A stretch of 18,880 bases of DNA, taken from positions 1 to 18,880 of the forward strand of contig JADGIF010000119.1 of the NCBI GenBank assembly GCA_018985225.1, read 5' to 3'. Shown here piece after piece: positions 8,035 to 16,079 of this stretch; positions within the stretch are counted from its first letter, which is position 1, and each line of letters opens with the position of its first letter. The translations under genes and the position numbers were made by a program. The notes under the pieces are model-generated. The model searched no databases and was not told the DNA's origin. It saw nothing but the letters and a program-made list of their open reading frames with translations. Origin of the DNA: Amoeboradix gromovi X-113. Taxonomy: Eukaryota; Fungi; Sanchytriomycota.

Positions 8035-8160
8035 CTCCTCGTTAAAAGTCCTGATTTCCGAGAAAATCGAGAATTTCCACAGAGAAATTAACGCTAGTTT
8101 CTCCGTTACAGTGATCGCTCACGCTTTCACTACCCTAATACGGGATTGAATAAGGATGCA
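8035..8160 (-). ncRNA. Putative omegaRNA scaffold, copy 1 (5' end uncertain)
   Basis: Three consecutive hairpins at 8108-8133, 8081-8104 and 8044-8077, lying at the element end downstream of RuvC-III. Conserved in all three copies. Confidence 0.6.
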
Positions 8161-8454
8161 TATACTTGATGTATATGTTCCTTGCTGCCATATGGTCTCT
8201 ATCTATTTCCAAATGACACTTTGTTCAGGTTCAGGTTTCTAAGTTGGTTTTCTTTAGAGTACCACATCTTGTACATGTCTGACCAGTAAATGATTCATTA
8301 CATTCGATTATCGTCTTCCTCTTTGCTTACACTTGAACTTCAAGCGTTCCTTGAATGCGTAATGGGAAATTGTTACCATATTTCTTGCGACCTTGCTACT
8401 TATCATTTAGCTAGCATTAAACGATGGCAAGTGTATAAGATTATATGTCTTTGT
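8042..8454 (-). pseudogene. Fanzor2/TnpB C-terminal remnant (copy 1)
   Basis: Frameshifted translation TYNLIHLPSFNAS*MISSKVARNMVTISHYAFKERLKFKCKQRG / TIIECNESFTGQTCTRCGTLKKTNLET* / KCHLEIDRDHMAARNIYIKY: a CxxC zinc finger plus RuvC-III DRDxxAARNI. Confidence 0.85.
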
Positions 8455-8930
8455 ATGCTGTACCTATTAGTTACTTATTTAGAATTGATTTGCCACTTGT
8501 GAAAAGGAAGAACATCTAGTATTTAAAGTATTAGAAAAATCTGGAAAAGTCTTGAAATCATACAAAAATCCATACAAATTCGCAATAAATGATTTATTCA
8601 AGAAAATAGTCAAGCTGTTTACTTTCTTTCTGTATCTTCGTACCTCATTCTCTTTGCCAATGTTTTCTTGTACAAGCTGTCTGTGTAATGATTCAATATT
8701 AAGACCCATTCTGACAAAATTTCATCATTTCCTAGTAGATGGAAGAGATGGAAACTACAGCAGGAATCATCTCTATGCCCTGCATCATATTTTAAAATAA
8801 AAGAATAAACGTTATTTCTGTTTGTCCGAGTCCATAGAATATGCAAGACCAGGGAATACTAAAAATATCAAGCTGAAATTGTTATTGATTTATTGTAAAA
8901 AACATATTCATCCGGGAAATTAATTTCATG

Positions 8931-9470
8931 CTAGAAAAATACAGTACCAGCAGCACTAATTGCTTCCGCTACTCTTGTTAACATATTAGGATATTTTGCC
9001 TTGAGATTTTCAATCACATCTTTGGTATTGACACCAAATAATTGAGAAATAACGACTCTTGAACCAATTTTTTTTGATCCCACCACCGAGCCTAATAGCG
9101 GAATAGTAATTTTCTGGACAATTTCATTGCACAAGGCAAACCTTAATCTAGAAAAATCTATTTCGGTATTATCATGAGCCTCAGGGCAGCTTAGAAACCT
9201 ATTCTCACAACTACTTACAAAATCGTCAAATTGAGAAACATAAACCTCAATACGAATCCGAGATTCAGATGTTTTAACCAATCTGAGAAATTCAAATAAA
9301 GGACTAAAGAGAGCATTTACATCTTCCTTATTTTTAACTTTATCCTCAGGTAGGCACGTGCTACGACTTTGTACAACTGGTTTGGCCACATGTTCAAAAC
9401 CAGCATCACGCTGTTCCTGTTCCTGTTCCATTAAGGCAAACATTGTCAATATGAAAATAAAACACTTCAT
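8931..9470 (-). CDS. Hypothetical, probably secreted protein (~179 aa)
   Basis: Open frame 8931-9536. The ATG at 9470 gives a short hydrophobic leader, MKCFIFILTMFA. No family recognised. Confidence 0.55.
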   Translation of the reverse strand: MKCFIFILTMFALMEQEQEQRDAGFEHVAKPVVQSRSTCLPEDKVKNKEDVNALFSPLFEFLRLVKTSESRIRIEVYVSQFDDFVSSCENRFLSCPEAHDNTEIDFSRLRFALCNEIVQKITIPLLGSVVGSKKIGSRVVISQLFGVNTKDVIENLKAKYPNMLTRVAEAISAAGTVFF

Positions 9471-9901
9471 GGAAAAGGAGTCTATCGTTGAGTGTTTAAA
9501 GGAGAGATATGATGGCACAATTTCAGAAAACGTCATGAGTACAACTCAAGGATATCACCTATTATAATGACTTCTTATAGTTGCCTATTTAGGCTTTTTA
9601 ATTCGAACTTTATTGTTCATTCGCGATGAGATAAATATTTGCGACATTCTTTACCTTGTGCGCAGAGTTGTACTGATCAATGCTAACTTTATTCCATCAA
9701 TTTGGGACTTTTTGTCCATTATAATATCTGTAGAGCACTCAGTTAGAGGCAGCTAAATATTCGGAATGGAAACCCTTGTAAGGTACGTTATATTCAGGTA
9801 ATTTTAAGCCGCGTTTTGATATCAAGACGCTAAGAAACTCCTGAAATTCAATGTTTCTTAATTTGCGTTCTATAAGAAGCTGATTGTTGATAAACAATAA
9901 T

Positions 9902-10378
9902 TTATTTTGGCGGATTACATTCATTGCAGATATAATCTATCAGTTCTTGTTTCTCCGAGACATTAACATGTCTAATCAATAGTTTTATTGATGCAACAAT
10001 GTCACTGCATTTGTTACTCTTTTCATCTTTGGAAAACCTAACCTGATTGGAATATCGAATGTTGCTGCAGTTAAGATTCACTATACTATGCTTAACATTT
10101 TTAATTAAATTCCAACTAATGTCTAATAATCTCAAGTTTTTCAAATTATATAGGTCTCTTATCTCTCTGATACGATTGTGCTGCAAATATAGCTCGTTTA
10201 ACTGTGTCAAATATTTCAGCACCTTGATGTTTGCAATTTTGTTAAAACTGAGATTCAAAATAGTTAGCATCGGGAAATACTGAATATTATCAATTGATTC
10301 TAGTGACATGCTGTTCAAGTTTAACTCCACGAGATTGGGATAATTACTGTTACGCTGAAGAACTTTGAGTTTTAGCAT
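9902..10378 (-). CDS. SDS22-like leucine-rich repeat protein
   Basis: Four LxxLxLxxNxI-type repeats (LVELNLNSMSL, LTILNLSFNKI, LNELYLQHNRI, LRLLDISWNLI). AATAAA overlaps the stop. The start or exon structure may be incomplete. Confidence 0.75.
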   Translation of the reverse strand: MLKLKVLQRNSNYPNLVELNLNSMSLESIDNIQYFPMLTILNLSFNKIANIKVLKYLTQLNELYLQHNRIREIRDLYNLKNLRLLDISWNLIKNVKHSIVNLNCSNIRYSNQVRFSKDEKSNKCSDIVASIKLLIRHVNVSEKQELIDYICNECNPPK

Positions 10379-10763
10379 TCACAAAGCAGGGCTAGCCGTG
10401 CATCTGAATCTAAAATTCTCCAGTTTCTCCAAAAATTGCGTCACTTTGGAAATAAAAACAACTTTGGTATGGTCAATTTAGCTTGTTTTTAACTAACTCA
10501 ATTTTAGCCACCTTGTAAACATCTCGATGCTCCTGCAGATGGCCAGAATAGGTACTAGATAATGAAGTATATCGAATTTTATATCATATGCCATATTAAA
10601 ATTCAATAGTAGGATGTGAATTAATGGGTGCCTATTATTATAACTTTGTGAGAGCTCTCGATTTTAATTCATAAAACAAAAAACTTAAAAGAATTTCATA
10701 ATCAACTCTTAACAAATAATTTCATGGCGCTAAAAAATTATTTACACTTTAAATTGCATCTGT

Positions 10764-11201
10764 TTACTGCTTTTTACAATAAGTATCATTTAACTTTTCG
10801 ATATTGCGAGTTATCTCGACAGCGAGAAATTGAATTCTCAATACGAATAATGTATTTTCCTCAGTATATCCTTTTGTGCAGTCAATTCGAACTAATGATC
10901 CAAAGTTGTACTCATTCACTTTTTCAAACAACTTTATAAAATCTCTCCACTTTAGTTTATATTCTTCTGCCTTGAACCATTTTGGATCTAGAATATCCAC
11001 ATTCATTTCAAACGTTTCTTTGAATGCTTCGTAAATTTCTTGATCCCATTTGGTTAACTTCAGACTACTTCCCTTAATTGCACTAATTAAGTTCTCATAA
11101 GTTTCCGCATGATGAAGTGCTTTTACTGCCCATTGCTTCTCTATATCTCCTAAGTTTCCCAATTTTTCAGCGTATTCTTCCACTTGATTTTTCGACGACA
11201 T
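10764..11201 (-). CDS. PBDC1: PBDC1 / yeast YPL225W-like protein (Polysacc_synt_4 domain)
   Basis: IEKQWAVKA..HAETY, LKLTKWDQEIY..F, KWRDF, YNFGSLVRID...Y.EENT.FV.RIQFLAVEI.RN. First ATG is at 11201; the track start at 11240 is a TTG. Confidence 0.9.
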   Translation of the reverse strand: MSSKNQVEEYAEKLGNLGDIEKQWAVKALHHAETYENLISAIKGSSLKLTKWDQEIYEAFKETFEMNVDILDPKWFKAEEYKLKWRDFIKLFEKVNEYNFGSLVRIDCTKGYTEENTLFVLRIQFLAVEITRNIEKLNDTYCKKQ

Positions 11202-14957: not shown

Positions 14958-14984
14958 AGAGAAAGCACTTCATCTCAAAATAGA

Positions 14985-15329
14985 ATGATTCTGGTAAGTG
15001 CACTTTATGCAATCACATGCGAGTTTAATTTGAACTCGGCAAGCGCAAACATAAACATCATGTTCACACCATTTTTTGTGCAAAAGTTAGAAGGCGCAAA
15101 CGTGGGAATAAGATCCAACTGCAACGGAAACGTAAAAACACAGCACATCTCTTTGAGTTTAAAAGGACAGGTTATAACCATTCCTAGCTGTTCTTGGCTA
15201 TCAAGAATCGATATCGCTTCAAATGTGTACAAAGGCGACTGGAAAGCATGTATGAAAAATTCATTTCAAGGTGACCAAGTCGTGTTAAACGTAGCATCTG
15301 ACTTGGAGTACACTGTAGCCACCACGTAA
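14985..15329 (+). CDS. Small secreted 4-Cys protein, paralog B (114 aa)
   Basis: Leader MILVSALYA. Shares INIMFTPFF, GIRSNCNGNVK, IPSC, IDIASNV and GDWKAC with paralog A. Confidence 0.8.
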   Translation: MILVSALYAITCEFNLNSASANINIMFTPFFVQKLEGANVGIRSNCNGNVKTQHISLSLKGQVITIPSCSWLSRIDIASNVYKGDWKACMKNSFQGDQVVLNVASDLEYTVATT

Positions 15330-15376
15330 AAATAGAATTTGTAAAAGTAAATGAAATAAAATCAAGTTGTTACATT

Positions 15377-15500
15377 CTACTTGTTAAAAGACCTGATTTC
15401 CGAGAAAATTGAGAATTTCCACAGAGAAACTAATGCTAGATCTCCGTTACAGTGATCGCTCACGCTTTCACTACCCTGAGGCGGGATTGAATAAGGATGC
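15377..15500 (-). ncRNA. Putative omegaRNA scaffold, copy 3
   Basis: Same three hairpins, at about 15449-15474, 15423-15445 and 15386-15419. Confidence 0.6.
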
Positions 15501-15805
15501 ATATACTTGATGTATATGTTCCTTGCTGCCATATGGTCTCTATATATCTCCAAATGACACTTTGTACAGGTTTAGGTTTCTAAATTAGTTTTCTTTCGAG
15601 TACCACACCTTGTCCATGTCTGACTAGTAAATGATTCGTTACAATCGATTACCGTAGTTACTCTTTGTTTACATTTAAACTTCAAGCGTTCCTTGAATGC
15701 GTAATTGGACATTGTAGCCATATTTCTTGCGACCTTGCTCGACAAGCTACTTAGCATTTGACTAGTATTAAACGAGGGTAAGTATATCAGATCATATGTC
15801 TTTGT
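15377..15805 (-). pseudogene. Fanzor2/TnpB C-terminal remnant (copy 3)
   Basis: Single frame with one internal stop: TKTYDLIYLPSFNTSQMLSSLSSKVARNMATMSNYAFKERLKFKCKQRVTTVIDCNESFTSQTWTRCGTRKKTNLET*TCTKCHLEIYRDHMAARNIYIKYMHPYSIPPQG... Confidence 0.88.
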
Positions 15806-15876
15806 ATGCTGTACCTGCTAGTTATTTCTTTAGATTTGACATGTTCAGGATTACATCTATTTACTCCATTTACCAT
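15806..15876 (-). pseudogene. Possible N-terminal stub of an IS607 TnpA serine recombinase (start of MerR-like HTH)
   Basis: MVNGVNRCNPEHVKSKEITSRYSI (copy 2: ...PEYVKSKEITSRYII). It sits directly after the left end and resembles the Y/HxxxKExxxxY/LxI/V first HTH helix. Short match only. Confidence 0.4.
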
Positions 15877-16079
15877 TTGCGAAGAGGAAGAATATTGAGT
15901 GTTTGAGCTATTAGAAAAATCTGGAAAAGTCTTGAAATGATACAAAAACATATACAAATTCACGATAAATGATTTATTCAAGAAAATAGTCAAGCTGCTT
16001 GCCAGTTTTTACTTGAACCTCAATTGAAGCGCTCTAATAAAATCCATAAAAACAAAGGTTGAATACGCCTTGAATCATT

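Follow-up and report, generated by a model that had tools for sequence, protein, structure and literature searches.

Nuclease-less derivatives of TnpB and Fanzor elements have been described in bacteria and fungi. In the zoosporic fungus Spizellomyces punctatus, 134 ghost Spu-1 loci of about 550 nt lack the nuclease, and ghost omegaRNAs work with the full-length protein (Saito et al. 2023, PMC10432273). PATE-like non-autonomous IS605 elements of Geobacillus stearothermophilus carry omegaRNAs that need TnpB in trans (Meers et al., PMC10055086), and the IS607 element CboIStron is excised scarlessly by TnpA with about 40 bp of its left end and 60 bp of its right end, while TnpB cuts the donor joint and the element is retained (PMC10690162). 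IS607EU elements with Fanzor2 form a named group (PMC13565253), exemplified by the mimivirus ApmFz2 (Bao and Jurka 2013, PMC3627910; Yoon et al. 2023, PMC10711439; PMC11832414), and a survey that listed 80 IS607 sequences in 13 eukaryotes found nothing to show that IS607 had transposed in such genomes (Gilbert and Cordaux 2013, PMC3673617). Here we analyzed a family of miniature IS607/Fanzor2 elements (hereafter minis) in the tiny alga-parasitic fungus Amoeboradix gromovi X-113, three copies of which lie in a stretch of 18,880 nucleotides (the window; contig JADGIF010000119.1, C240 in our numbering) of assembly GCA_018985225.1 (10.55 Mb, 1319 contigs). The published genome, of 10.5 Mb, was whole-genome amplified and assembled with SPAdes (PMC8371127).

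We consider it fairly probable that the minis are a selfish, self-guarding, non-autonomous IS607EU family of the ghost and PATE-like kind, whose parents are now broken and whose copies are largely decaying, rather than a guide library kept by the host.

The mini family and its three copies in the window

At least 429 right ends and at least 384 left ends were counted genome-wide by pattern, with zero control matches, and the family occupies about 0.26 Mb, or 2.4% of the assembly of this reduced genome. The three repeats in the window were confirmed; they lie between genes in the same orientation, with common ends and unrelated flanks (mean column identity 87%, flanks included). The initial annotation, made from the letters of the window, had drawn attention to this co-orientation, which is a matter of chance since the right ends divide into 215 forward and 214 reverse genome-wide. 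Its description of the copies as high-copy, non-autonomous IS607/Fanzor2 derivatives in a zoosporic-type fungus was borne out, each copy having both element ends, a dead TnpB/Fanzor C-terminus (E.FTxQT..C..DRDHMAARN), an omegaRNA-type right end and a guide in the right flank. The three 20-nt guides that it quoted match the right flanks exactly, and the peptide of copy 3 matches PF07282 with 53 bits (cut-off 26.3). The N-terminus of tnpA inside the element had been overlooked.

Comparison of 35 distinct full-length copies fixed the ends as a left flank ending in (A)(A/G)CAG, an element ending in TTTTAACGAGGAG, and unrelated DNA beyond. CAG stands directly left of the element in 26 of the 35 copies. 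AG occurs at both junctions, closing the left flank (as part of CAG) and closing the element, an arrangement that would fit a recombination core as well as a 2-bp target-site duplication. Dispersed as at least 430 copies that have fixed ends, lie in unrelated DNA and favor CAG, the family provides strong evidence of past IS607 transposition in this eukaryote. The most similar pair of copies is 93% identical, and each copy has 4–19 private changes (about 1.4%).

Positions 1–118 of the consensus form a non-coding left end with motifs about 10 bp apart, two of which are repeated in the right end (for IS607 end motifs, see PMC6188088). No terminal inverted repeat was found, the best inverted match between the ends being 11 bp long and subterminal. 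A miniature inverted-repeat transposable element (MITE) in the strict sense is thereby ruled out, and the family is MITE-like only by size and copy number. Positions 119–192 code for the start of an IS607 TnpA (~25 residues), as judged from the match to the TnpA starts of the metagenomic relatives L166 and L080. After a 3-nt ACA microhomology, the consensus jumps from tnpA to the C-terminus of Fanzor2; the uncut continuation of tnpA is seen in other deletion classes and the uncut Fanzor2 in longer copies. The Fanzor2 remnant keeps the shifted Glu, the zinc finger and RD, and RuvC-I, WED and REC are gone, so the minis are unable to encode a nuclease. Further deletion classes of the element, of about 460–930 bp and with different junctions, were observed at L008:967-1439, L009, L037:602-1060, L041, L047:372-944 and L073:1187-2119, and older right-end relics, about 70% identical, lie near many copies.

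The family has traits of three described groups. As in Fanzor2, the motif ESFTSQTC...DRDHMAARN places a Glu six residues before a C4 zinc finger that is followed by RD, and the longer same-family copies on contigs C385, C565 and C477 have a DPG RuvC-I, which is deleted in the minis. As in IS607, a serine-recombinase TnpA stands upstream of tnpB: each mini keeps the tnpA N-terminus, the sister copy C46 matches PF00239 and a tnpA C-terminal fragment remains in C385, although all same-family tnpA copies are broken. As in ghost loci, both ends are present, the nuclease open reading frame (ORF) is lost and the copies are many. The features of the window copies, all on the minus strand, are as follows; TAM denotes the target-adjacent motif.

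8035–8614, minus: mini IS607/Fanzor2 copy 1, 580 bp, with 29-bp and 9-bp deletions, a 1-bp frameshift and stops
8615–8617, minus: CAG target motif and predicted TAM left of copy 1, its AG the predicted recombination core (from IS607 biology)
8133–8144, minus: nexus hairpin of the predicted omegaRNA of copy 1, loop mutated (GTATTA), pseudoknot disrupted
8015–8034, minus: predicted guide of copy 1 (host flank); second genomic target not found
11418–12036, minus: mini copy 2, 619 bp; its right end AAAAGTAG disrupts the pseudoknot partner
12037–12039, minus: CAG target motif left of copy 2
11398–11417, minus: predicted guide of copy 2; second target not found
15377–15994, minus: mini copy 3, 618 bp, the most complete of the window copies
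15995–15997, minus: CAG target motif left of copy 3
15877–15994, minus: non-coding left end of copy 3, with GA(C/T)TTT-like motifs ~10 bp apart, two repeated in the right end; candidate TnpA sites
15803–15876, minus: first ~25 codons of the IS607 serine transposase gene tnpA in copy 3 (MVNG..EYVKSKEIT.RY), ending at the 3-nt ACA microhomology
15387–15802, minus: Fanzor2 C-terminal remnant of copy 3, with shifted RuvC-II Glu (15638–15640), zinc finger, RuvC-III RD and one TAA, and without RuvC-I, WED and REC
15377–15544, minus: right end and predicted omegaRNA scaffold of copy 3, with the nexus hairpin (15474–15485) and three stem-loops
15379–15382, minus: pseudoknot partner of copy 3, broken (ACAAGTAG); predicted AG core at 15377–15378
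15357–15376, minus: predicted guide of copy 3; second target not found

Both junctions of copy 3 were reproduced with zero differences in independently assembled Logan contigs of the probable source run, and its broken right end is also present there.

Search for a nuclease and a transposase acting in trans

PF07282 has at least 150 matches in the genome. When searches were made with the middle of the protein, which the minis have lost, only about nine longer pieces of their lineage were found, the broken parent pieces being searched one by one. The direct parent fragments on C565, C385 and C977 are 88–93% identical to the mini and carry the DPG RuvC-I and the same right end; all three are broken by stops, deletions or an inversion. 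The sister copies on C46, C477, C1 and C11 are either broken or truncated at contig edges, and on C46 the Fanzor2 frame is open for 335 codons up to the contig edge while tnpA has four stops. Among these roughly nine long pieces in the assembly, no intact nuclease or transposase of the same family was found. The proposal that an intact Fanzor2 encoded elsewhere loads the guides gained no support from these pieces of a fragmented assembly, in which a cognate enzyme may be hidden. The one open Fanzor2, on C542, belongs to a different family.

The C542 gene encodes an open 671-aa Fanzor2 (L056:1476-3491, minus strand) with the D-E-D residues intact (DPG/E/RD), a match to NF040570 above the cut-off and 9B0L (ApmFz2) as its best PDB match. 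The locus has CAG in its left flank and a hairpin similar to that of the minis; one residue of the first zinc-finger pair is missing, and the tnpA at this locus contains a stop. Coverage of the contig is low (0.86) but its repeats are common with other contigs. As the parent of the minis C542 was ruled out: it has no DNA match to the mini, is single-copy, has no minis of its own and shows 44–56% protein identity (44% to the parent fragment). C46 and C542 are alike in having a dead tnpA and an open overlapping Fanzor2 frame, as if the nuclease had outlived the transposase. For an assay of cleavage, the C542 Fanzor2 offers itself as a natural candidate.

C459 carries an open IS607 transposase that belongs to a third family (NF033518, 159 bits). 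The Fanzor frame at this locus is interrupted by a single in-frame stop, and its RuvC-III has the variant form DRDINPG. Altogether, at least two to three further IS607/Fanzor2 families were observed (C459, C578, C689, C420, C392, C1028, C690, C373, C197 and C787). The tnpA loci on C459, C578, C689, C420, C392, C1028, C690 and C373 were rejected as the source of the minis, since they are of different families and have no end similarity.

It is unlikely, in our judgment, that the same selfish system is still running, with an intact cognate TnpA and Fanzor2 in collapsed or missing sequence, or with C542 cross-loading, guarding about half of the copies. The open frames on C46 (despite the four tnpA stops), C542 and C459 speak for it, as do the CAG flank and similar hairpin of C542, the hairpin and pseudoknot kept in 17 of the 35 copies, and the precedent that ghost omegaRNAs function with SpuFz1 (PMC10432273). 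On the other hand, a running system sits poorly with the lack of near-identical copies among those compared, and the single-copy C542, with its divergence from the parent fragment, zinc-finger defect and tnpA stop, does not look like the partner of the minis.

Predicted omegaRNA, guides and mosaic variation

The last ~125–170 nt of the element are predicted to fold into a 3-bp hairpin and three stems, the same architecture being found in distant relatives, and the hairpin loop is predicted to form a pseudoknot with the 4 nt that precede the terminal AG. Loop and partner covary, as CCTC:GAGG in the minis, CCTCA:TGAGG in L166, CCTAG:CTAGG in L080 and L083, and CCTAC:GTAGG in L084, with AG after each. 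This covariation is persuasive but thin; a recognizable hairpin was common to only 4 of the 91 relatives screened, and the swap control was underpowered (p = 0.17). Pseudoknots are known in IS607 TnpB and Fanzor2 RNAs, and a single mismatch reduces the activity of ISXfa1 to less than 1e-4 (PMC11832414). Folding of single copies gave z < -2 in 14 of 34, and the right-end alignment and consensus fold were not significant (z -0.6 to -1.2), an ORF control segment folding equally well. The omegaRNA assignment therefore rests on covariation and shared architecture. An Rfam scan of the window gave no match at E ≤ 1. The structured right end claimed from the window alone thus stands for the family and not for the three window copies, in none of which hairpin and pseudoknot are intact. 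A at right-end position -6 was observed in three copies (copy 3, L009 and L029), whose right flanks start with AATGTA (window 15369–15376); these possibly form a subfamily that took along a few bases of flank or recombined beyond the end.

As the element ends in GAG and the target in CAG, a CAG TAM would prevent self-cutting, by analogy with GGG versus CGG in ISXfa1. The other multi-copy deletion classes retain the last ~165–170 nt, and the listed deletions that reach into the scaffold are single contigs. Scaffold retention in the amplified classes hints that the RNA aided their spread, which is suggestive only. It also bears on the possibility that the family was always inert and MITE-like, with the terminal TnpA sites alone mattering and the omegaRNA region a hitchhiker that never worked in trans. 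We find this improbable: neutral decay, a shared pseudoknot-weakening variant and the weak consensus folding signal would fit it, but the ~165-nt scaffold is spared in several independent deletion classes that were amplified, the deletions ending just upstream of it, though TnpA needs far less (PMC10690162), and it differs from the reading of a decayed self-guarding family in past function only.

When CAG followed by each of the three window guides was searched for in this genome with up to two mismatches, only the own junction of each was found. Mutations present in at most two copies are even along the element (observed/expected 1.02 in the right end, 1.15 in the hairpin and 1.95 in the pseudoknot partner), and those in the ORF remnant are neutral (ratio of nonsynonymous to synonymous change, omega, ~1.3; nine stops). 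The scaffold thus shows no purifying selection after insertion, and the copies decay at the neutral rate. With these three guides and this genome, neither targets beyond the own site nor purifying selection on the scaffold were seen, and the guides are able to address only their own empty insertion sites. Since the scaffolds are neutral, the window pseudoknots broken and the guides single-target, a repertoire kept by the host, as the initial annotation had envisaged, is unsupported, and the three window copies are probably non-functional. Although there are hundreds of distinct guides on paper and one open Fanzor2 (C542) outlives its transposase, it is therefore very improbable that the minis are retained by the host to serve a domesticated Fanzor2 whose targets lie elsewhere, in defense or genome regulation: the guides consist of host flank, for which there is no route of acquisition, and have no second target, the scaffolds are unselected, and the pseudoknots are broken in 3/3 window copies.

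Variants common to at least four copies behave differently from the rare ones. In the Fanzor2 remnant, 30 are synonymous and 15 are not (omega ~0.17, p = 9e-9), the tnpA stub shows no synonymous bias (3:8), and the same shared alleles are present in long copies. Such variants therefore originated in Fanzor2 genes that were still coding; since they now stand on a single deletion junction, sequence must have flowed repeatedly from coding elements into the minis. Linkage between sites (r2) falls from 0.28 below 15 bp to 0.08 at 15–55 bp and 0.04 beyond 100 bp (permutation p = 5e-4; in coarser bins, 0.19 below 30 bp versus 0.036 beyond 100 bp), and all four allele combinations occur in 81% of site pairs. 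Homoplasy on a clonal tree was rejected as the cause: simulations with hypermutable sites gave r2 of 0.24–0.40 and four-gamete fractions of 12–45%, against ~0.05 and 81% observed. The default largest k of SPAdes in single-cell mode is 55, and switches less than 55 bp apart are hard to obtain by graph mis-joins if this value was used. We think it probable that the mosaicism is real, and possible that the mosaic, synonymous-biased variation is a footprint of nuclease-driven repair. A bolder version, in which a living IS607/Fanzor2 with a CAG TAM still protects the gene-less minis in trans, by the hundred, and its cycle of cutting and repair keeps exchanging short tracts between copies that code and copies that do not, appears doubtful; if true, Fanzor restorative homing would be on record for the first time at genome scale in the nucleus of a eukaryote.

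Elsewhere in the window, the genes are consistent with a fungus (CAP59-type mannosyltransferase, Rab GTPase, fused GARS-AIRS and PBDC1). Tandem paralogous ORFs of ~115 aa adjoin copy 3 (13987–14337 and 14985–15329), with no NCBIfam match for the first and no Pfam match for the second. Positions 1–101 are the end of a second high-copy repeat family (80–98% matches in more than 12 loci examined), longer copies of which translate to ..FERDxGSSSFILKRG, one near a DEYHTSKKC motif, which suggests a remnant of Fanzor1 type.

Proposed history and comparison with known systems

On the reading that we favor, a eukaryotic IS607 transposon encoding TnpA and Fanzor2 would have invaded the genome and shed internally deleted derivatives, of which the 620-bp class outcompeted the others and reached at least 430 sites. 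TnpA in trans would have excised and inserted the minis through 2-bp AG recombination, as expected from work on IS607 and TnpB. Transcription through the right end would yield an omegaRNA whose guide is the local flank, and full-length Fanzor2 in trans would cut only the empty CAG-plus-flank site left by excision, so that homologous repair could reinstate the mini (restorative homing). Template switching among hundreds of copies during this repair may have produced the microhomology deletions and the mosaics, judging from general repair biology. Once the parents were broken, most minis, including the three window copies, would have become decaying relics.

Several points weigh against this history. 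The assembly is amplified and fragmented, the parent pieces C46, C477 and C565 end at contig edges, and an intact parent could be collapsed in it. The 35 copies analyzed are the top-scoring matches and are biased to conserved ones. No empty site was found when the joined flanks of the 35 copies were compared with all loci examined, and neither an empty allele nor a circle (right-to-left) junction occurred among the Logan joints listed over copy 3, in contigs that lose rare forms. The pseudoknot is weakened by a variant of the right end (T at -3) that 7 of the 35 copies have in common, and a perfect scaffold was therefore not required for spread. Part of the mosaicism could stem from read correction and bubble collapse in an amplified sample. 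Finally, we infer the AG core, the CAG TAM and expression by analogy with described elements.

The words 'transpos' and 'repetitive' are absent from the main text of the genome paper (PMC8371127), and Amoeboradix is not mentioned in the available part of the supplements of Saito et al. or in the text of Yoon et al.; the family seems undescribed in the literature searched. The suggestion of a possibly undescribed RNA-guided system may hold for the family but does not for the concept, which is known from ghost Fanzor loci (PMC10432273) and PATE-like elements (PMC10055086): the minis represent a known kind of RNA-guided system at an unusual scale. The family offers concrete predictions (TAM CAG, AG core, pseudoknot scaffold) and points to natural intact relatives for assay.

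These relatives are the uncharacterized intact IS607/Fanzor2 elements L166 (JGI Ga0102960_1025404), L080 and L083 (GCA_013565735.1), and L084, which have an AG end and a pseudoknot; they are metagenomic. L166 has an open Fanzor2 frame 66% identical to the C-terminal peptide of the mini, the same hairpin loop and a GAGGAG end, and L080 lies among virus-like genes (S74 peptidase and ricin-B lectin domains).

Among described systems, the Spu-1 ghosts are similar to the minis: both occur in a zoosporic fungus, in many copies that have lost the nuclease and kept the two ends, an omegaRNA region and a motif conserved upstream. The Spu-1 ghosts belong to Fanzor1, have 30-nt terminal inverted repeats and coexist with 19 full-length genes, whereas the minis are IS607/Fanzor2 elements with a pseudoknot and fragments of tnpA and Fanzor2, have no terminal inverted repeats, number at least 430 copies in 10.5 Mb and were seen with no intact cognate. 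Like PATE and CboIStron, they would be gene-less omegaRNA elements needing TnpA and TnpB in trans, with a nuclease whose cut at the empty donor joint leads to the return of the element; the bacterial systems are experimentally shown and have tens of copies, and the minis lack an intron. With IS607EU/ApmFz2 they share a serine-recombinase TnpA overlapping Fanzor2, the DPG RuvC-I, the Glu six residues before the zinc finger, the right-end pseudoknot and, as predicted, a 2-nt core, although the predicted core and TAM are AG and CAG here in place of GG and GGG. Their copy number is far above that of the whole set of Gilbert and Cordaux (2013).

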